From Octopus bimaculoides (Eukaryota), in contig NC_068989.1 in NCBI RefSeq assembly GCF_001194135.2, forward strand, positions 16,786,753 through 16,850,752: DNA of 64,000 nucleotides, given 5' to 3'. Position numbers and translations under genes: made by a program. Positions 25,331 through 64,000 of the stretch are shown here, in pieces (the first letter of the stretch is position 1; every line of letters starts with the position of its first letter). The notes under the pieces are model-generated. The model was not told where the DNA came from and did not search any database. It was given only the letters and a program-made list of their open reading frames with translations.

Positions 25331-25948
25331 AATTAGAAAATGGAGGAGAACATGCTGTACCTAACGACTTGCAGACAGTGTATTCCGTTGAATTAATTAA
25401 CTTATTTTGTAACTAAAATGACAAAAACCACAAAATACAAATGTTTATGACAAACCATGTTATATTAAGAATCGGGGTTACAAATATAAAGTACATTAGG
25501 AATTTGAGAATAAACATAAACTTACAGCTGTTTCGGCCTAGTGTTGGCATGCCCCATTCTATCCGTATAGCTCCTGCCGGAGTAATTAGCAGATGAAATG
25601 CTGAAATGGGGGTACATGCACGATTCGCAAGGCCTCTTCAGAGATTCATAAAAATTCCACACAAATATAAAGTAAAATATAAAATAGAAATAAAAATAAA
25701 GATAAGAGTACAGTAAGAATAAAATAAATAAATGAAAAATGAAAATATAAAATATAAAAATATAAGGCACATAAAATGCCTACAAACAGTACATAAGGTC
25801 ATACCGATTCTTAATATAACATGGTTTGTCATAAACATTTGTATTTTGTGGTTTTTGTCATTTTAGTTACAAAATAAGTTAATTAATTCAATGGAATACA
25901 CTGTCTGCAAGTCGTTGGGTACAGCATGTTGTCTTCCATTTTCTAATT
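25331..25948. repeat. Long inverted repeat: 145-bp arms (about 4 mismatches), 328-bp spacer; the right arm runs into an N gap
   Basis: 25331-25475 is the reverse complement of 25804-25948. Confidence 0.93.
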
Positions 25949-28035: not shown

Positions 28036-28821
<786 letters not shown>

Positions 28822-30621: not shown

Positions 30622-31129
30622 GGATCTATTTCAAAACGGGGGCACCAGTTTTCATTTATGTTTTATGTAGTGTTTTTGGTACCGAAAGACTTTCAAACTT
30701 CGTATACTTATCTATTTTGTGTTATAGAACAGAAAAAATTTTTGTATTCGAATTTATTTCATGTANNNNNNNNNNNNNNNNNNNNNNNNNNNNNNNNNNN
30801 NNNNNNNNNNNNNNNNNNNNNNNNNNNNNNNNNNNNNNNNNNNNNNNNNNNNNNNNNNNNNNNNNNNNNNNNNNNNNNNNNNNNNNNNNNNNNNNNNNNN
30901 NNNNNNNNNNNNNNNNNNNNNNNNNNNNNNNNNNNNNNNNNNNNNNNNNNNNNNNNNNNNNNNNNNNNNNNNNNNNNNNNNNNNNNNNNNNNNNNNNNNN
31001 NNNNNNNNNNNNNNNNNNNNNNNNNNNNNNNNNNNNNNNNNNNNNTTTATATGACACATTCTACCAGTGTCCCAAGTTTCAAAGTGTTTCGTTAAGAAAA
31101 TACTGGTGCCCCCGTTTTGAAATAGATCC
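30622..31129. mobile_element. MITE M1, copy 2 (opposite orientation, gapped)
   Basis: Same 27-bp TIRs; perfect 8-bp TSD gaaattgg (30614-30621, 31130-31137). Confidence 0.92.
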
Positions 31130-32749: not shown

Positions 32750-33080
32750 AAGAATCTTGCTTCTCAACCACATGGTTCCGTGTTCAGTCCTACTGCATGG
32801 CACCTTTGGCAAGTGTTTTGTGCTCTAGCCTCAGGCCAACAGAAGTCTTGTGAGAGGATTTGGTAGACATATATCTATGTAAGGGGTGGGTCTGTGTTTG
32901 TCCCCCACCATCACTTGACAACTGGTGGTGGTGTATTTACATCCCTGTAACTTAGCAGTTCAGCAAAACGACCGATAGAATAAGTACTAAGCTTCGAAAA
33001 TAAGTCCTAGGGTTGATTTATTCGACTAAAACCTGTCAAAGCGGTGCCCGGGCATAGCCACAGTCAAATGACTGAAACAT
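32750..33080 (+). mobile_element. SINE family B, degenerate
   Basis: Head through cagtcaaatgactgaaaca. Confidence 0.8.
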
Positions 33081-33202: not shown

Positions 33203-34321
33203 GGATCTTTGTGATTTGACGGGCAACACTTGTTTTCTTAACGAAACACTTTCAAACTTGGGACACTGGTAGAATGTGTCATACAAAACAACTTTTTCTC
33301 TTAGTCTTCTTAACAAAAAAATGTACATCGCAAGTTATTTCATGTTAAAGTTGTCGTATTTCTGTAATTTCAACCAATCACTGACGTCTATTCAGCTGAA
33401 TAGACGTCAGTGATTAGTTGAAATTATCGAAATAAGACAATTTTTAACGTGAAATAACTTCGAATACAAAATTTATTATCTGTTCTATACCACAAAATAT
33501 ACAAGTATACGAAGTTTGAAAGTGTTTCGGTACCAAAAACACTACATAAAAAAATGTTGCCCGTCAAATCACAAGGGTCCANNNNNNNNNNNNNNNNNNN
33601 NNNNNNNNNNNNNNNNNNNNNNNNNNNNNNNNNNNNNNNNNNNNNNNNNNNNNNNNNNNNNNNNNNNNNNNNNNNNNNNNNNNNNNNNNNNNNNNNNNNN
33701 NNNNNNNNNNNNNNNNNNNNNNNNNNNNNNNNNNNNNNNNNNNNNNNNNNNNNNNNNNNNNNNNNNNNNNNNNNNNNNNNNNNNNNNNNNNNNNNNNNNN
33801 NNNNNNNNNNNNNNNNNNNNNNNNNNNNNNNNNNNNNNNNNNNNNNNNNNNNNNNNNNNNNNNNNNNNNNNNNNNNNNNNNNNNNNNNNNNNNNNNNNNN
33901 NNNNNNNNNNNNNNNNNNNNNNNNNNNNNNNNNNNNNNNNNNNNNNNNNNNNNNGAAATGAAGCACTTGGTGGAGGTGCATTAATAATTCTGGTAGCTCC
34001 AATAACAAGTGCAGGCGATATTCAAGTATTTTGATGGCTTTTTCCCCTTTGTTTACGAACAATCTAGTTAATCGGAAATGTCAGAACTAACGGGGATTAA
34101 TACCATATACACCGTCACAGTAGTTACTGTATTCAGCTGAATAGACGTCAGTGATTAGTTGAAATTATCGAAATAAGACAATTTTTAACGTGAAATAACT
34201 TCGAATACAAAATTTATTATCTGTTCTATACCACAAAATATACAAGTATACGAAGTTTGAAAGTGTTTCGGTACCAAAAACACTACATAAAAAAATGTTG
34301 CCCGTCAAATCACAAGGGTCC
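33203..34321. mobile_element. MITE M1' (M1 body with different terminal TIRs)
   Basis: TIR gga(t/c)c(t/c)ttgtgatttgacgggcaaca; perfect 8-bp TSD aaatggta (33195-33202, 34322-34329); subterminal arms homologous to M1. Confidence 0.88.
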
Positions 34322-34752
34322 AAATGGTAAGTTGGAACATGTTGAACACACCAGTATTTATAGGGCAATTTAAGAATTATGCTAACATTATTTCAGTTTA
34401 CAGTTCCAATTATGTATTTTATCAGTAACTTCCGTGTAATTGTCATTTTGGTTTATTGCCTATAAATGTTTATTGGTCAACATGTTCTTGTATATACCCT
34501 AGCCTGTAGGTTGATAGATCAACAAGAAACAGGTTTCTGCTAACAATGTATTATTTTCCAACAGTTGTATGGAGCAGACAGAACAAATGCGATGTCCTCA
34601 CGTTCATATATGAGGCTATCACAAGGTACCAGCCTTATCCTCGCCAGATTTTTTGTTTCTACTGCACAACAGTTGCTTCAACTACCCATCAACTAACCAC
34701 ACTTTATCCCTATAAGTATCATAATTTTAGTTTTAACATTTTCCAGAGTTTC

Positions 34753-36032: not shown

Positions 36033-37180
36033 CTTGTAATCTGCTTCCCCTCTGGCTAAATAAACCTGTCTCCTAGCTTCCTTTCGGGCAGTCTGATACA
36101 ATTCCCTGCTACCTCCATTCTTCCAAGCCTGTTTTTTTTGTCTAATAGCCCTGTCAACCAGATTGTTCCATCACCACGTTACCATGGGTTGAGAGGGGAC
36201 TTTGCACCATCCACAGATCTGGTCAGTGACTCTCAGCAGGTTGTCCCGAAGAAACCTCCAGTTGTCTTCCACATTACGTGATGCTATATCCCCTTCTATA
36301 TCCCCTTCTATTTCATCAAAGGCTTCGAGTAATGCGTCTCTAAATCTCTGTCCATTTGCAGGATCTTTAAGCTTCCAGACCCTTCTCCTCCAAGCTGGTC
36401 TTCTTCTGGGCATCCATTTAGCCCTGATCCCGAAGTTGCTAACTACTAATCTATGTTGAAGGATACATTCTTCGCCTGGGAAGGTTTTGACATTTATAAG
36501 CAGCCCTCATTCCCTTTTTCTGGTGAGGATGTAGTCAATTTGGCTAATGTGTCTGCCAGAACAGTAGGTGACAGGCAGGTTTCCTGAAGTTGGTATTGCA
36601 AACCATAAGATTATTTGCATCACAGAACTCCAGCAGTCTTGTTCCCTCCTCATTGCGGGAACCATAGCCTCCATGTATGCCATGGAAGCCCCCTGCCTGT
36701 TGTCCAACATGTCCATTGAAATCACCAGCCACAAAGAGAAGGTCCCTGTCATTCGTCAACAAGGTAGTCTGCAATAGGGTGTCATAAAATCGGTCTTTCT
36801 GCCCATCCAGTAGAGGAGCATAGGCCGAGATAATGGTAGCTAATCCATGGTGAAGCACTAATCTAATCTTAAGTACTCTGTCACATGCTCTGACTACCTC
36901 GATTACCTTATCAACCCATTTCTCCGCAAGAAGTCAACCCACACTCCCGATCCCGTCAGTGTTCTTTGCCCAGAAAATCTTGTACCTGTGTTCTTTGCCT
37001 GTGAGGAACCTAGCAGAACATCCTCTCCACCTTACTTCTTCGATGCAGCACAAATCTACACGTCTCCATTCCAGTATCTCAACAATCTCACCAGACCTAC
37101 CTTTCAGTGTGCTAACTCTGAGGGTGTGGGCCTGTGAGGCCCTGGGACGAGGGACAGCAGTGTCATGTACCTGAAAAGAA
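36033..37180 (-). mobile_element. RTE-clade LINE 5' ORF fragment (APE endonuclease plus linker), frameshifted and 3'-truncated
   Basis: APE motifs STLKGRSGEIV..VDLCCIEEVRWRG, IISAYAP, AGDFNGHVG, RNEEGTRLLEFC..NTNFRK, SQIDYIL; then RRRVWKLKDP..WWWN..ARRQVYLAR. Confidence 0.93.
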
Positions 37181-42772: not shown

Positions 42773-43648
42773 TCACGTGTCACTGTTAAAAGACTTAGCT
42801 CCAGTGTGTATCCGTATGTGTCTTTTTAATAAACTCTTACTGATAAACGATTTCCCACATATGTCACAGTGGAAAGGTTTTTCTCCAGTATGACTACGTT
42901 TGTGAACTATAAGACTAGAATTCTGAGTAAAAGATTTATCACATAGCTCACATTGGAAGGGTTTCTCTCCAGTATGTATTCTTTTGTGTGTTTTTAAATC
43001 ACTGTTAGAGACAAAAGATTTTCCACATATTTCACAGGGATAGGGTTTTTCTCCAGTGTGACAACGTTTATGAACGGTAAGTTTAGAGTTTTCTATGAAA
43101 GACTTACCGCATATATCACAGTGAAATGGATTTTCTCCTGTGTGTATTCTTTTATGTTTCGTTAAATTACTGTTATACACAAAATATTTCCCGCATATTT
43201 CACAGTTATAAGGCTTTTCTCCAGTATGTATCCTTTTATGAACTATAAGACTAGACTTTACAGAGAAAGATTTCCCACATATTTCACAAAGGAAAGGTTT
43301 CTCCCCAGTGTGTATTGTTTTGTGGGTTACAAGGTTCGAATACTGAGTACAGGATTTCCCACAAGTTTCACAATGGTGTAGTTTTTCTCCAGTATGTATT
43401 GTTTTGTGTGTTGTTAAATGACCATTAGTGATAAATGATTTTCCACATATCTCACATCGATACGGTTTTTCTCCAGTGTGACTACGTATGTGGATTGTAA
43501 GCTTAGAATTCTCACTGAAGTTTTTCCCACATATTTCACAGTGAAGACTTTTACGTGAACGTTTTTCACCGCTGCACGTCTTTGCAACTGATTTTCTATT
43601 GCTGAAAACATTCGTTTTGGAAGTGTCCAAGTGATTAACTTCTGCCAT
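42773..43648 (-). CDS. C2H2 zinc-finger protein, 9 tandem fingers, 291 aa (ZNF gene 2)
   Basis: Nine C-x2-C-x12-H-x3-H units with TGEKP-type linkers; 34-aa leader; intact ORF. Confidence 0.95.
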   Translation of the reverse strand: MAEVNHLDTSKTNVFSNRKSVAKTCSGEKRSRKSLHCEICGKNFSENSKLTIHIRSHTGEKPYRCEICGKSFITNGHLTTHKTIHTGEKLHHCETCGKSCTQYSNLVTHKTIHTGEKPFLCEICGKSFSVKSSLIVHKRIHTGEKPYNCEICGKYFVYNSNLTKHKRIHTGENPFHCDICGKSFIENSKLTVHKRCHTGEKPYPCEICGKSFVSNSDLKTHKRIHTGEKPFQCELCDKSFTQNSSLIVHKRSHTGEKPFHCDICGKSFISKSLLKRHIRIHTGAKSFNSDT

Positions 43649-43667
43649 ATTAATTCACCTTTAATTC

Positions 43668-43683
43668 CTAAAATACAAGAAAT
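43668..43683 (-). promoter_or_regulatory. Probable 3' splice site 19 nt upstream of the ZNF gene 2 ATG
   Basis: Minus strand atttcttgtattttag|gaattaaaggtgaattaatATG. Confidence 0.65.
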
Positions 43684-44686
43684 GTCTGTGAGTATAAGCT
43701 ATTATGGTTCAGTTTATTTTGAATATCACGGGATACTATTTGTATGAGTTAAAAATATGCAATATATCTACTTATTTACTTACCACTGGAATGTTTGTTG
43801 TTGAATACATCTATCGTCGTGAGAGACACATTTTTGACAATACACAACAAAATAAAAGCACCTAAATTTGAATGTCAAGAATTCACCCATTGGTTGGTAA
43901 TTAAAACCATTTCATGAAAGCTAATCGCTCATTGGCTGATCATTAAAACATGTTTGCTCTGTCGTGTTAAATAAGGCTGTATAACAAAGATGTGACAAAA
44001 TAAAATATTTAGTCATGCAAATGATGGAACACCGATCTATTCTCAAACACCTCCCGACATGAGATAATTGCTATCCGTGAACGTTTAGGCGGTGTCGTTA
44101 AAAATGTATTCCACTATTGAATGATACCGGTGACATAAGGTAAAAGTCCTTAACATAAATTAATACCGCTAAAACGTCTTTAGTTACACCAATTTCTATC
44201 CAGCTCATTGAAAATTAAAAATAAGACGTCACCCAGCAAATTAACTCCATTGTTCGACTAGCTAGAAATAACAATCAAAAACTCACTCATCGTCCTGTAT
44301 AATACATTTGACAATGAAGTTCTAGATGTGGCCCAAAATACACACATACATATACACACACACAAACACATGCACAATAGGCGTGCTTTCCGTTTTTTCG
44401 TTATTGTTTTGGTTGACTGTTGAGCATCACCAAATATCAAACAAACGCTGTCTTAGCAATGTCATTTGTAACATATTACCGTAAATATTAAAGACCGAAA
44501 GTATTTATCCCTATTAACATTGTAGACTTTTGTTGCTACCTCTGACTTCGCTATTCCGATTCTTTTTCTATTTTTATTCCACTATTGAAAACCCGAATTA
44601 CATTTTATAATACAACCTGCCTTCCCGTCTTCTTTTGAGATGTTCGGGAGACCCTGGCCACTGACTACGTAGTTTTTATCATTGGC

Positions 44687-44778
44687 GTCTTCACTGTGAA
44701 ATATGTGGGAAAAACTTCAGTGAGAATTCTAAGCTTACAATCCACATACGTAGTCACACTGAAGAAAAACCGTATCGA
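44687..44778 (+). repeat. Inverted 92-bp copy of finger 1 of ZNF gene 2
   Basis: Reverse complement of 43457-43548 with a single difference (cactgaag vs cactggag); encodes (S)[30 protein letters not shown]. Confidence 0.95.
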
Positions 44779-44781
44779 GGG

Positions 44782-45868
44782 TGTAGGGAAACTACCTATC
44801 GTCACTAGATACAAAACTGCTATCGCCATTCTTCTCATTTAAATATAAACAAACGCGAGCGTAGCAGAGAACCCATTCCTTGTCATCACGTGACTGATTA
44901 ATATTCGAACCGTTCCCGCTAGAACGCAAACTGACCAATCACGGCCCCTAATAAGGTCACGTGATAGTGTTTTTCTGCTACCGTCTTGGAGCCGATAATT
45001 CGCTATAAATAGAGCAACTCATACCCAACAAATTTGTCTCGGTTCAGTTTCTCTTAGAGACTGTTCCGTGTACCACACGACAGCAGCAGCAACAATCAGC
45101 CAGCGACCACTTCAATAGCNNNNNNNNNNNNNNNNNNNNNNNNNNNNNNNNNNNNNNNNNNNNNNNNNNNNNNNNNNNNNNNNNNNNNNNNNNNNNNNNN
45201 NNNNNNNNNNNNNNNNNNNNNNNNNNNNNNNNNNNNNNNNNNNNNNNNNNNNNNNNNNNNNNNNNNNNNNNNNNNNNNNNNNNNNNNNNNNNNNNNNNNN
45301 NNNNNNNNNNNNNNNNNNNNNNNNNNNNNNNNNNNNNNNNNNNNNNNNNNNNNNNNNNNNNNNNNNNNNNNNNNNNNNNNNNNNNNNNNNNNNNNNNNNN
45401 NNNNNNNNNNNNNNNNNNNNNNNNNNNNNNNNNNNNNNNNNNNNNNNNNNNNNNNNNNNNNNNNNNNNNNNNNNNNNNNNNNNNNNNNNNNNNNNNNNNN
45501 NNNNNNNNNNNNNNNNNNNNNNNNNNNNNNNNNNNNNNNNNNNNNNNNNNNNNNNNNNNNNNNNNNNNNNNNNNNNNNNNNNCCTTCACATACAGACTCA
45601 TACTATTGGGTACACAAGAACTGGTATAATTGCTCACGTGTTATTGACTCTCTTTCCATCTGCTGTAATAACTCACATACACATACATGTATCACTCACA
45701 TACATACTTTTCTTTGTACGACGGCCTGTCTTTGATTATGTTCTTATATGTCGCATTCACACTCTCACATAGACATACATCTTTTACGCCACAATAAATA
45801 TCTCTGTTATTCATCTTATACGGGTGTGGTCTTTCATTGCTGGTCATCTATGTTATCGTAGTATAACA
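44782..45868 (+). mobile_element. Probable solo LTR (TG..CA), gapped
   Basis: Starts tgtagg and ends gtataaca; two tcacgtga boxes (44886, 44957), CCAAT (44935), TATAAATA (45004), AATAAA (45793); no TSD found. Confidence 0.45.
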
Positions 45869-46237
45869 TATTTGTATATCATCTTTGATATATATTATTT
45901 TGTGTTCGACCGTGTGACACGTTTAAATAAAAGGAGTCCTCTGTTTTTCCATTCGTCACCATTTCTCCTTTTTGAGTTCGCACGGTCGTTCCTTACAAGG
46001 GTACTAAGTTGTTCCAAGTGTCTCTAACTCGCGTTAAAATATCGTGTTTTGGATACCGTAAAACGTGTTGGGGGAAAATGTCAGCATTCCCTGTTTGTGT
46101 GTGTAATTGAAGGAGTGTATTTTCCTCGTGACTCATTTTTATTATTATTATCCATTTACCTTTGTAAATACTATTCTTAATATAATGCTTGTAATGTTTA
46201 AGAAATTAGTTATAATCTGGATATTAAATTCAAATAA

Positions 46238-46400
46238 GCCCGGACCTGTCGATGTGTTGTGTTCTTTAGCAAAACACTTCTTTTCACGTCGCTCCAGTCC
46301 ATTCAGCTGGCAAAAGTGAGTAGACCTATAACAGACCAGCGTCCCATTCAAGGAGGAATATATCCACCAGAGAAGTCGGGAAACTGGCCTTGTGCTTCTT
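46238..46400 (+). mobile_element. SINE family F, degenerate
   Basis: gttgtgttctttagcaaaacactt..gctccagtccattcagctggcaaaa matches 21665-21725. Confidence 0.75.
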
Positions 46401-46699
46401 ACGAAGTAATGTGGACTAGCCACTAAGTTTACTAAAAATTCTCGTTGAAAACCGCAAGAAATTTCATGGGTTTTATGGAGAATGATTTTATTAGTTGATG
46501 TAAAACATGCAAGTATCTTTTGTAGTTACTTCAGCTGTTGATTCCAACATATTTACTTCTCTTACACTATTTTTATACTAATTTCTATTCATTCTACCAA
46601 TTATTAAAAATAAATTTTGAAGACAGCTACCCAGAATTCGATATTTACTTCTGATATTTTTTATTGCTATCCATAAAAAGTAATATTAATCAGGTTGTA

Positions 46700-46880
46700 G
46701 TGACGACTAATATCAGTCGCCATTTCTGGAGAGTTTATCCACGCATGCGCAGGGACTAGTTCCGGAAGGAATACAGGAAGAGTCTCATGCGCATGCGTAG
46801 TCATCCAATATCCAAGCGTTCCCGCTTCTTTCGATCTCTTTGCTCGCTGAACTTCGTGGAAGCTAGACGTCACAATAGCA
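46700..46880 (-). promoter_or_regulatory. CpG-rich housekeeping-type promoter, probably of ZNF gene 2
   Basis: Two NRF1-type sites (cgcatgcgca 46742-46751, tgcgcatgcg 46788-46797), ETS ccggaag (46762-46768), YY1-type AAATGGCG on the minus strand (46718-46725), CRE-like site near 46865. Confidence 0.6.
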
Positions 46881-47671
46881 GCTCTCCGACAACTCTACAA
46901 TGGAGCCATATAGATAACCAGAAAGGAGAAAAATGACTTCTAACCACGCAACTTCATTGACGGCGTCTCATCTAACCAAAGGGCGACATGTTACCGAATT
47001 CCCTCCTAGTGTGAGCAGAATTCTACTGTAATAAATATTCGTTGTGTTGTTAGTTTAGAGTCTGCGTTCCGTTTTCTTCCTTAAGAAATTTTATGTACGG
47101 AATTGAGATACACCTAATGGTGTATAACCACTTCCCTACAAGGTCATTGTTCAGTCATAACTGTCCATCAAGTTAACTAATATTATTACTGATTGAAGAA
47201 GGTTTATATTAGATATTTTCTGATGATATTCTTATCATTGTTCTTTTTTGTTTGTTTGTTTAATCTAATATAAAATTTGTAACACTTTTTAAAACTACTT
47301 TCTTTTGATTATAAACCTGCTCGGAGTTGATTAGGAGCTAAACAACAACAACATGCATTTGATCGTAGGTTGTTAGACTTACTTGAAATAGCAGCCAAAT
47401 TTCTACTATCATGAAGAGAGGGAGGGAGGGAGAGAGAGAGAGAAATGCAGGATTGTTTCTGCTGGAATGTATTTGTCTTAGATCTGCTCACTCAGGTTGA
47501 GTTGGGGTTAAATAAGTCACTAAGTGAGCCTTGATGTGGTCTCTCTTATAGACAAATTTCCCTGAAATTACACCCATCTTGAAATAAAAGGGCTATATTG
47601 GATGACATAGTCCTAGATACATATGCTCAAGAGAAGAATGGAATAGACATGGCTAAAATATTTTTCATTAT

Positions 47672-58241: not shown

Positions 58242-59117
58242 TTATGAGGCTTTTTCTCCTGAAAGTAAGCATTTGTGTCTCGTTAAAGTACCTGTCTGAG
58301 AAAATGATTTACCACAGCTATTACAACAATAGGGCTTTTCTCCAGTATGAATGCGATTGTGAGTAGTTAAGTTACTTCTTCCAGTGAACGATTTATCACA
58401 GATATCACAGTGAAATGGCTTCTCTCCTGTATGAACGCGTTTGTGTTTCGTCAAGTGACTGCGTTGAGAGAATGATCTACCACAAATATCACAGAGATAT
58501 GGCTTCTCTCCTGTATGAATGCGTCTGTGTGTAATTAAAACACTTCCATCATAGAATGATTTACCACAGATATCACAAAATGGCTTGTCTCCTGTATGTA
58601 TGTGTTTATGAGTAGTTAATTCACTTGTTTGAGAGAATGATTTACCACAAATATCACACTGATATGGCTTTTCTCCAGTATGAATGCGTATATGTGTAGT
58701 TAACCCATGGCTTTGAGAGAATGATTTGCCACAGATACTACATTCATGTAGTTTTTCTCCTGTATGAATACGTGTGTGTTTAGTTAAACCACTACTTTGA
58801 GAGAATGATTTATCACAGATTTCACAGTGATATGGTTTCTCTCCTGTATGAATGCGTTTGTGGCCAGTTAGCCTATATCTTTGAGAGAATGATTTATCAC
58901 AGATATCACAGTGATATGGCTTTTCCCCTGTATGAATACGTTTGTGCCTAGTTATGTGAGCTTTTTGAGAAAATGACTTTTTACAGATATCACAGTGGTA
59001 AAATGCTTTTGATGTCTCTTTCAGCATCTCATCATGAAAACCAATACCTTCAGATATTTTTTTACATTTAACCTGTTTCTCACATATTTTATTTTCCATC
59101 ATTTTTTTACCTCTCAT
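58242..59117 (-). CDS. C2H2 zinc-finger protein, 8 intact fingers plus 1 lacking its second His (ZNF gene 3); the start may be the MEN ATG at 59099
   Basis: Tandem C-x2-C-x12-H-x3-H units with TGEKP linkers; leader homologous to gene 1. Confidence 0.95.
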
Positions 59118-59548: not shown

Positions 59549-59930
59549 AGGTGCAGGCATGGCTGAATGGTTAAGAAGTTCCTTTTGCAACCATATGGTT
59601 TCAGGTTCAGTTCCACAGCACAACACCTCAAGCAAGTGTCTCTAGGCTGACCAATGCCTTACAGGTGAATTTGGTAGATGAAAACTGTGTGGAAGTCCAC
59701 CATATATGCATGTGTGCTTTTGTATTTGTCACCCACCACTGCTTGACAACCTGAGTTGGTTTTATTTTTTTATGTTCTCTGTAACTTAGCAGTTCAGTAA
59801 AAGGAACTGATAGAATAAGTACCAAAAGTGAGAATAAGAAGTGGGATTGATTTGTTTGACTGGAGCCCTTCAAAGTGGTGCTGCAGCATGGGCACAGTCC
59901 AATCACTGAAACAAATAAAAGGTAAAAGAT
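59549..59930 (+). mobile_element. SINE family B, degenerate full length
   Basis: ataggtgcaggcatggctgaatggttaag head through ctgaaacaaataaaaggtaaaag. Confidence 0.85.
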
Positions 59931-60291: not shown

Positions 60292-60499
60292 CTCTTTTAC
60301 TTGTTTCAGTCATTTGACTGCGGCCATGCTGGAGCAGCACCTTTAGTCGAGCAAATTGACCCCAGGACTTATTCTTTGGAAGCCTAGTACTTATTCTATC
60401 GGTCTCTTTTGCCGAACCACTAAGTTACGGGGACGTAAACACACCAGCATTGGTTGTCAAGCGATGTTGGGAGGACAAACACAGACACAAACATATACG

Positions 60500-61564: not shown

Positions 61565-62054
61565 CTTTATCTTTTACTTGTTTCAGTCATTTGACGGCGG
61601 CCATGCTGGGGTATCGCCTTGAAGGGTTTTAGTCGAACAAATCGACCCCCAGGACTGTATCTTAAAGCATAGTACTTATTCTATCGGTTTCTTTTGCTGA
61701 ACAGCGAAGCTACAGGGATCTAAATACACCAACACCAGTTGTCAAGCGGTGGCGGGGAACAAACACAGAAACAAAGACACACACACACACATATATATAT
61801 ATATGGTAATCTTCAAGTTTAGCGGGATGAAAAAATAAATAAAAATATTCAAGGGAAGTAACTGAACGTCTTACCAGTATTCTCCGTACATCTCTGTTTA
61901 TAAATAAATCACACACGTGATTTGATTGACGTTAGGATTAGTGTTAGGGTGTGATTTATTTATAAACAGCTAGAAGAAAACGGATAATACTGGTAAGTCG
62001 TTCAGTTATTTCCCTTGAATATTTTTTTTTTATCCCCCTAAACTTGAAGATTAC

Positions 62055-62400: not shown

Positions 62401-62819
62401 GGTCCAGATGGACTATATGTAATCTGAACCTTCCCCCCCTTATTTATTAATTTTTTTTACGGAATCCCACGTTTTAGGCTATGGAGATTCCGATTCTGAA
62501 AAAAAATTGTTTGAAAAATTNNNNNNNNNNNNNNNNNNNNNNNNNNNNNNNNNNNNNNNNNNNNNNNNNNNNNNNNNNNNNNNNNNNNNNNNNNNNNNNN
62601 NNNNNNNNNNNNNNNNNNNNNNNNNNNNNNNNNNNNNNNNNNNNNNNNNNNNNNNNNNNNNNNNNNNNNNNGGGGGGGGGGGTATCGAAATTTTGAAATT
62701 GAGATTTTTGAAAATTTTTTTTCAGAATCGGAATCTCCATAGCCTAAAAACGTGGGATTCCGTAAAAAAAAAAAAAATAAGGGAGGAAAGGTTCAGATTA
62801 CATATAGTCCATCTGGACT
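62401..62819. mobile_element. MITE M5 with TIRs over 100 bp
   Basis: TIR (g/a)gtccagatggactatatgtaatctgaacctt..tacggaatcccacgtttt.ggctatggagattccgattctgaaaaaa; perfect 8-bp TSD gccaaaat (62393-62400, 62820-62827). Confidence 0.9.
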
Positions 62820-63645: not shown

Positions 63646-64000
63646 TATATATATGGTGGTTGTCTACTCCTTAAACAGAGTTTGACCACCTCCTGCACCT
63701 ACACCTTAGCCCTTTCATGGCGTCTGATGTGGCTTTTTAAACCAGACAGTTTTGAAAAGACACCCACACAGATTGCACCTCTGATTTGCACTACCAATAC
63801 CTGCAAGTAAGTTCTGTTCATTGTGGATCCTAACATGTCTTTTAAGACCCCCATTGGATTTGCAAACCCTCTGGCACACACCACATTCAAACGTGTGCAC
63901 AGACATATAATCAGAATAGCTGGATGAGGTTTGTTTTCCATGGGTTCGCAGGTGAGATTTGAGGCCAGCCAAGGACAGACATGGTCTGTCACAGACTGTG
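63646..64000 (-). mobile_element. RTE-like LINE 3' end with three C2H2-like motifs (continues beyond the window)
   Basis: Minus frame TVCDRPCLSLAGLKSHLRTH..FECGVCQRVCKSNGGLKRHVRIH..RCNLCGCLFKT, a 1-nt frameshift, then LSGLKSHIRRHERAKV*; short 3' UTR ending acaaccacc(AT)n; no TGEKP linkers. Confidence 0.6.

Follow-up and report, generated by a model that had tools for sequence, protein, structure and literature searches.

A young inverted copy of a single zinc finger upstream of a C2H2 gene in Octopus bimaculoides, probably a neutral micro-duplication

The 64-kb window analyzed here (64,000 nt of Octopus bimaculoides chromosome CM046609.1, assembly GCA_001194135.2, same strand, with window position 1 at 16,786,753) contains three intact C2H2 zinc-finger (ZNF) open reading frames (ORFs), and the second of these, ZNF gene 2, is accompanied on its upstream side by a near-perfect inverted copy of its first finger. 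We regard this copy, with a probability of about 0.6, as a real, young and most likely neutral inverted micro-duplication which, if it is transcribed together with its source exon, would provide an incidental substrate for hyper-editing or for Dicer. This reading is supported by a match of 91 in 92 nt with sharp edges, flanks that are unique in the window, the absence of terminal inverted repeats (TIRs) and target-site duplications (TSDs), and the location of the only difference in the copy. An earlier reading made from the sequence only had proposed a functional role: that the copy is an intronic editing-complementary sequence (ECS) which exposes a DNA-recognition helix to ADAR. All positions below are those of the window; the principal features are collected in Table 1.

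The repeat search identifies two arms, 43457–43548 and 44687–44778, each 92 nt long, 99% complementary and separated by a 1138-nt spacer. On the chromosome they occupy 16,830,209–16,830,300 and 16,831,439–16,831,530, respectively. Direct comparison gives 91 matching positions out of 92, which, as a sequence match, is far beyond chance and marks the repeat as non-random. The exon arm begins at the second base of codon 34 (Ser) and extends through the third base of codon 64 (Arg), taking in S-L-H, the whole of finger 1 and the linker TGEKPYR. It ends just ahead of the first Cys of finger 2, and its 92 nt compare with a finger period of 84 nt. Similarity between the arms breaks off abruptly at both edges, and the copy matches the other fingers of ZNF gene 2 at only 70–77%. 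Within the arm lie the three helix codons GAG (E46, position -1), AAG (K49, +3) and ATC (I52, +6).

The sole mismatch lies at 43473, where the exon arm has C and the reverse complement of the copy has T; the copy carries A at 44762, and the sense strand of the gene carries G. In a minus-strand RNA this difference would be accommodated as a G·U pair, with the exon G facing the upstream U. The exon retains GGA, the family-consensus codon for the Gly of TGEKP, and the copy has GAA, which turns TGEKP into TEEKP; the derived G>A change at 44762 therefore arose in the noncoding copy. The sequence-only reading had described the copy as the reverse complement of finger 1 plus its linker, stopping before the first Cys of finger 2, with one difference that would pair as G-U, and had judged all three helix codons to be recodable. 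Each of these descriptions is borne out by the comparison and by the codon reading.

Nothing else of this kind is present nearby. Self-BLAST of 43650–47200 returns no second such copy, and the flanks are unique in the window except for one unrelated 150-nt repeat. Apart from the three ZNF ORFs, tblastn with a finger consensus detects no further isolated finger in the 64 kb, the two neighboring ZNF genes in the window lack an inverted finger copy of this sort, and no Rfam family or tRNA scores above threshold in the region. Inverted pairs as such are common here: nine pairs of at least 50 nt and at least 90% identity, with arms within 5 kb, occur in the 64 kb, which indicates that such events are routine. 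Among them the finger copy is the most identical, and it has a coding arm. The other nearby inverted pairs, several of which end exactly at N gaps, are probably repeats of the short interspersed nuclear element (SINE) or hairpin type that broke the assembly. Such pairs, at 91–97% identity, include 25331–25475 with 25804–25948, 62402–62519 with 62704–62818, and 30661–30764 with both 33447–33551 and 34188–34292.

A divergence of about 1%, one substitution in 92 nt, implies a recent origin. Two sources were considered and rejected. A decayed head-to-head paralog, or an exon, is ruled out: the flanks of the copy hold no finger-like remnants, and stop codons lie on both sides. A fragment carried by a transposon, as a miniature inverted-repeat transposable element or by Pack-type capture, does not fit either, with no TIR or TSD around the copy and flanks that are unique in the 64 kb. 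We infer instead that 92 bp of the coding exon of a lineage-specific C2H2 gene were copied and placed, inverted, into the CpG-rich 5' region of that gene, 1.14 kb farther upstream. The probable mechanism is repair, of a double-strand break or at replication, in which either a fragment from close by was captured or the segment was synthesized from a template; after insertion, the noncoding copy would have gained its one substitution.

Templated or captured "filler" insertions and inverted duplications formed by replication template switching occur at repaired breaks, and the octopus copy resembles them in being a short inverted segment templated nearby, with clean junctions and no transposon hallmarks. 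It differs from them in lacking junctional microhomology: both junctions are blunt, and no microhomology was found at either. The nearest candidate is a 10-nt match, TGACTACGTA, between the left flank of the copy and the interior of the exon arm (43479–43488). It lies 16 nt outside the left junction, and 66 of 2000 shuffles reach 10 nt (p ~0.03), so that its significance is marginal; it may be a microhomology and is not used here as support. The same 10-mer also forms a 10-bp inverted repeat with 44747–44756.

The copy is probably physically present in the genome. The assembly is a 2015 shotgun draft that was re-scaffolded with Hi-C (PMC9068888); the underlying sequence is a short-read (Illumina) draft, with 12 N gaps across the 64 kb. 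That the copy was made by short-read assembly or gap closing and is absent from the genome is unlikely, although this window gives some reason to consider it. A gap lies 341 nt from the copy, several of the other inverted pairs abut gaps, and a 193-nt direct repeat, 100% identical (33389–33581 and 34130–34322), flanks the N gap 33582–33954; the latter is a typical gap-flank duplication artefact and calibrates the trust to be placed in small duplications of this assembly. Look-ups also produced no independent contig or transcript with the copy: exact-product searches with the ORF of ZNF gene 2, three small ORFs overlapping the copy and the two neighboring ZNF ORFs either gave no hit or led only to the GCA_001194135.2 chromosome, and none of the window's three ZNF proteins turned up in a cluster look-up. 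Against an artefact, the copy sits within 1.47 kb of gap-free unique sequence and abuts no gap; one base differs between copy and source, which re-use of the same reads would not give; and its orientation and sharp internal placement are unlike the usual gap-flank pattern.

If both arms were present in one RNA, they would be expected to pair. In the predicted fold of the 1431-nt minus-strand RNA 44830–43400, the 92-bp duplex dominates both the minimum free energy and the centroid structures, with 92 contiguous pairs including one G·U and a predicted duplex energy of -166.3 kcal/mol, in agreement with the earlier proposal that a fully paired 92-bp duplex could form. With 99% identity over 92 nt and a 1138-nt spacer, the pair lies well inside the operational definition of a potential intramolecular double-stranded RNA (dsRNA), namely a reverse-complement alignment of 50 nt or longer, with no less than 80% identity, inside ±2 kb (PMC9989829). 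The exon arm holds 33 adenosines and the upstream arm 23.

What editing such a helix would attract depends on its class. Two classes of ADAR editing are distinguished: site-specific editing in short imperfect duplexes, and promiscuous editing of long dsRNA, in which up to ~50% of adenosines are modified (PMC4693238). An editome survey across Metazoa, which covered O. bimaculoides and for this species drew on public matched DNA and stranded neural RNA-seq, found editing mainly in the dsRNA of young inverted repeats, in hyper-edited clusters (PMC9989829). Octopus editing falls mostly in introns and 3' untranslated regions (UTRs), where hairpins are abundant (PMC9699675). By this analogy, the near-perfect 92-bp helix comes close to the promiscuous hyper-editing class and does not belong with site-selective recoding. 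Of the 33 possible exon-arm edits, 26 would be nonsynonymous, among them H36R, both zinc-ligand histidines (H53R and H57R) and the helix positions; damage to the finger is thus to be expected, not a tuned specificity.

These properties bear directly on the ECS proposal, in which the intronic copy pairs with finger 1, ADAR recodes residues of the recognition helix, and one gene gives rise to several DNA-binding specificities. Complementarity does extend over the entire recognition helix in a thermodynamically dominant predicted duplex, and coleoids recode extensively (PMC9068888, PMC9989829). However, a perfect 92-bp helix predicts promiscuous editing (PMC4693238), and with 26 of 33 edits nonsynonymous and His>Arg changes at both zinc ligands, several specificities from one gene are not the expected outcome. 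In octopus, moreover, recoding levels were found to correlate with the structure of the surrounding mRNA, over ~100 nt (PMC7703385). Neither conservation nor recurrence supports a function: the neighboring ZNF genes lack the copy and no ortholog of ZNF gene 2 was found. The proposal is a legitimate, testable hypothesis which the available evidence does not support, and we consider it highly improbable.

The parallel drawn in the sequence-only reading, that this is the geometry of the GRIA2 and GRIK2 ECSs, holds in part of its outline and fails on the duplex itself. Vertebrate glutamate-receptor pre-mRNAs have exon-intron ECSs, at the Q/R and R/G sites of GRIA2 and the Q/R site of GRIK2, where pairing acts on a kilobase scale; in BLCAP, the editing partner of the Y/C site lies in the upstream intron. 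The octopus locus is alike in that a noncoding segment, up to kilobases away, is complementary to a coding exon, would pair with it only in the pre-mRNA and would place codons inside dsRNA. It is unlike them in that those ECS duplexes are short, imperfect and conserved and their editing is demonstrated, whereas the present helix is a near-perfect 92 bp, young, unconserved as far as can be seen and only possibly intronic.

Young inverted repeats, e.g., primate Alu pairs and those described across Metazoa, including O. bimaculoides, are a closer likeness: near-identical copies within ~1 kb that form a long perfect helix (PMC9989829; PMC4693238). The difference is that the unit here is not a transposon: it is the host gene's own coding exon, and hyper-editing would strike codons.

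Whether any of this can happen depends on where transcription of ZNF gene 2 starts. A convincing splice acceptor at 43668 (ttcttgtattttag/G), which the sequence-only reading had already pointed out, is followed by an in-frame TGA ahead of the ATG; any upstream exons are therefore 5'UTR only. Three promoter-like clusters compete for the start (Table 1). The donor GTG/GTAAGT at 43783 is the best minus-strand donor in 43.6–47.1 kb and would define a 115-nt intron to the acceptor 43668; of the six strict NF-Y motifs in the window, two are located 111 and 153 nt upstream from this donor. The arrangement suggests that transcription begins near 43.83 kb; the copy, ~850 nt farther upstream, would then be inert DNA outside the transcript. 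With a start at the second cluster (44885–45010), where two CACGTG boxes form a 10-nt inverted repeat, the RNA could carry the copy at its 5' end or close to it, and with a start at the third (46742–46797) the copy could be intronic. The earlier description of the copy as intronic is an assumption: the cluster at 46742–46797 exists and, with the acceptor at 43668, would include the copy in an intron, as the ECS proposal needs, whereas the rival proximal donor and NF-Y boxes would exclude it and leave it untranscribed. A search for an upstream block conserved among the three ZNF genes, as a shared promoter or 5'UTR, found none. Taken together, co-transcription of both arms is given somewhat less than an even chance.

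Two details of the upstream clusters are recorded in their own right. The E-box decamers ATCACGTGAC and GTCACGTGAT bracket a CCAAT box and are followed by TATAAAT on the plus strand, a promoter-like module which points towards the assembly gap. The NRF1-like GCGCATGCG palindromes are 47 nt apart, with CCGGAA between them; the window holds 11 near-matches to this motif, compared with 1.3 expected.

Should a minus-strand transcript start at ~44.8–44.9 kb or ~46.7 kb and span both arms, it would form the perfect 92-bp duplex, and its fate would be promiscuous hyper-editing of many arm adenosines by ADAR, dicing, or both; the duplex could also interfere with the 3' splice site held in its loop. 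The edited product would be a heterogeneous set of mostly damaged finger-1 variants, and hyper-edited RNA might be retained or degraded. The likely net effect would be noise or a mild down-regulation of the intact protein, not tuned recoding. Such a case would be rare in nature: a newborn perfect duplex would cover a transcription factor's DNA-recognition helix, in a host whose ADARs are exceptionally active. It could reveal the way in which exon-complementary sequences originate and what a coding exon at once gains or loses by hyper-editing. If the arms are not co-transcribed, the copy simply joins the other small inverted duplications of a draft genome rich in repeats; the words "intronic" and "edited" need transcripts as proof.

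Dicing raises the possibility of a hairpin-RNA or antisense autoregulator, in which a minus-strand transcript through the copy would pair with the ZNF mRNA, either in cis or in trans, before being cut into endogenous small interfering RNAs (endo-siRNAs) that silence the gene. Drosophila hairpin RNA (hpRNA) loci and the pseudogene-derived endo-siRNA precursors of mouse oocytes arise by inverted duplication of target-gene fragments. The octopus copy resembles them as an inverted duplicate of a gene fragment that lies near its parent and could yield dsRNA against it: like an hpRNA, it was made from the sequence that it would target, here finger 1 of the gene next to it; a perfect duplex of 92 bp suits Dicer well; and upstream transcription is plausible in a promoter-rich context with undepleted CpG. 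In hpRNAs, by contrast, both arms come from a noncoding transcript of their own, and small RNAs have been documented, whereas here one arm is the functional exon itself. A single young arm pair without any sign of maintenance also argues against such a role, which we hold to be quite unlikely. Within the window, targeting would be confined to finger 1 of ZNF gene 2: the longest perfect match of the copy is 18 nt to the rest of this gene and 9–12 nt to the neighboring ZNF genes. On this count, siRNAs directed against the ZNF family, an option raised in the sequence-only reading, are unlikely.

A further variant combines these consequences with the recent origin: the new copy would be co-transcribed in ADAR-rich octopus neurons, and finger 1 of this lineage-specific transcription factor would be strongly and variably recoded or the gene silenced by its own endo-siRNAs, i.e., a coding-exon dsRNA would be caught at its birth. 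This is very unlikely. Were it true, it would show how micro-duplication can give rise to ECSs or hpRNA-like regulators within a ZNF family that is expanding rapidly in cephalopods.

The copy shows no sign of selection that can be read from its sequence: there is one substitution, and it lies in the noncoding arm. Its preservation of pairing is unremarkable, as a G·U-compatible outcome is expected for ~1/3 of random substitutions. A single O. sinensis ZNF locus (73.6 kb) contains one finger array and no isolated inverted finger, which, with n = 1, is not a rate.

Several points weigh against the neutral reading. The region 43.8–47.0 kb has a CpG observed/expected ratio of ~1, against a window median of 0.42, and this lack of CpG depletion probably marks an active, unmethylated 5' domain; such a domain does not point to any one start site, but makes it quite possible that the copy is transcribed. 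Neutrality itself is argued from youth and lack of recurrence, as seen in the sequence, and a single change in so short a stretch (92 nt) is compatible with drift and with selection for pairing alike. Finally, the arm stops exactly before the first Cys of finger 2 and spans the whole recognition helix, a suggestive coincidence.

Table 1. Features of the ZNF gene 2 locus and its upstream region (window positions)
Feature	Position	Strand	Details
ZNF gene 2 coding exon	42773..43648	-	291 aa, nine C2H2 fingers, ATG at 43648
Exon arm	43457..43548	-	ZNF gene 2 codons 34-64, finger 1 plus linker TGEKPYR; source of the duplication
Candidate 115-nt 5'UTR intron	43669..43783	-	GTAAGT...TTGTATTTTAG; exon start 43668; best-scoring donor in 43.6-47.1 kb
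Two strict NF-Y CCAAT boxes	43887..43937	-	AACCAATGG and AGCCAATGA, 42 nt apart; candidate proximal promoter
10-nt match TGACTACGTA	44662..44671	+	flanks the copy on its left; same 10 nt at 43479-43488 within the exon arm
Inverted copy	44687..44778	+	finger sense on plus strand, antisense on minus; 91/92; finger frame flanked by stop codons
Second promoter-like cluster	44885..45010		E-box decamer pair ATCACGTGAC / GTCACGTGAT, GACCAATCA, TATAAAT on plus strand
Assembly gap, 463 N	45120..45582		341 nt from the inverted copy
Third promoter-like cluster (placed at ~46.7 kb by the sequence-only reading)	46742..46797		two GCGCATGCG palindromes plus CCGGAA

The three ZNF ORFs (28036–28815, 42773–43648 and 58242–59117) all lie on the minus strand. 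The 291-aa protein of ZNF gene 2 scores above the curated cut-offs of two Pfam families, with 178 bits for PF00096 (zf-C2H2) and 246 bits for PF13465 (zf-H2C2_2); the peptide of the inverted copy alone reaches 28.8 bits against PF00096. A search with the full-length protein found no ortholog and returned mostly generic C2H2 matches, the best cephalopod match being 49% identical (O. sinensis), and a query made of the N-terminus plus finger 1 gave no ortholog candidate; both results fit a lineage-specific ZNF gene 2. The CpG-rich patches upstream of the other two ZNF genes are due to copies of a SINE-like, CpG-rich element (TGTTTCAGTCATTTGACTG...), found at 32890–33079, 59779–59822, 60342–60486 and 61579–61769. 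An ORF fragment at 36547–36858 on the minus strand matches the endonuclease-reverse transcriptase domain PF14529 (E 2.7e-5) and is a remnant of a long interspersed nuclear element. Weak C2H2-like finger remnants at 63705–63891, also on the minus strand (tblastn E 0.003) and near the end of the window, may belong to a degenerate or divergent fourth ZNF gene.

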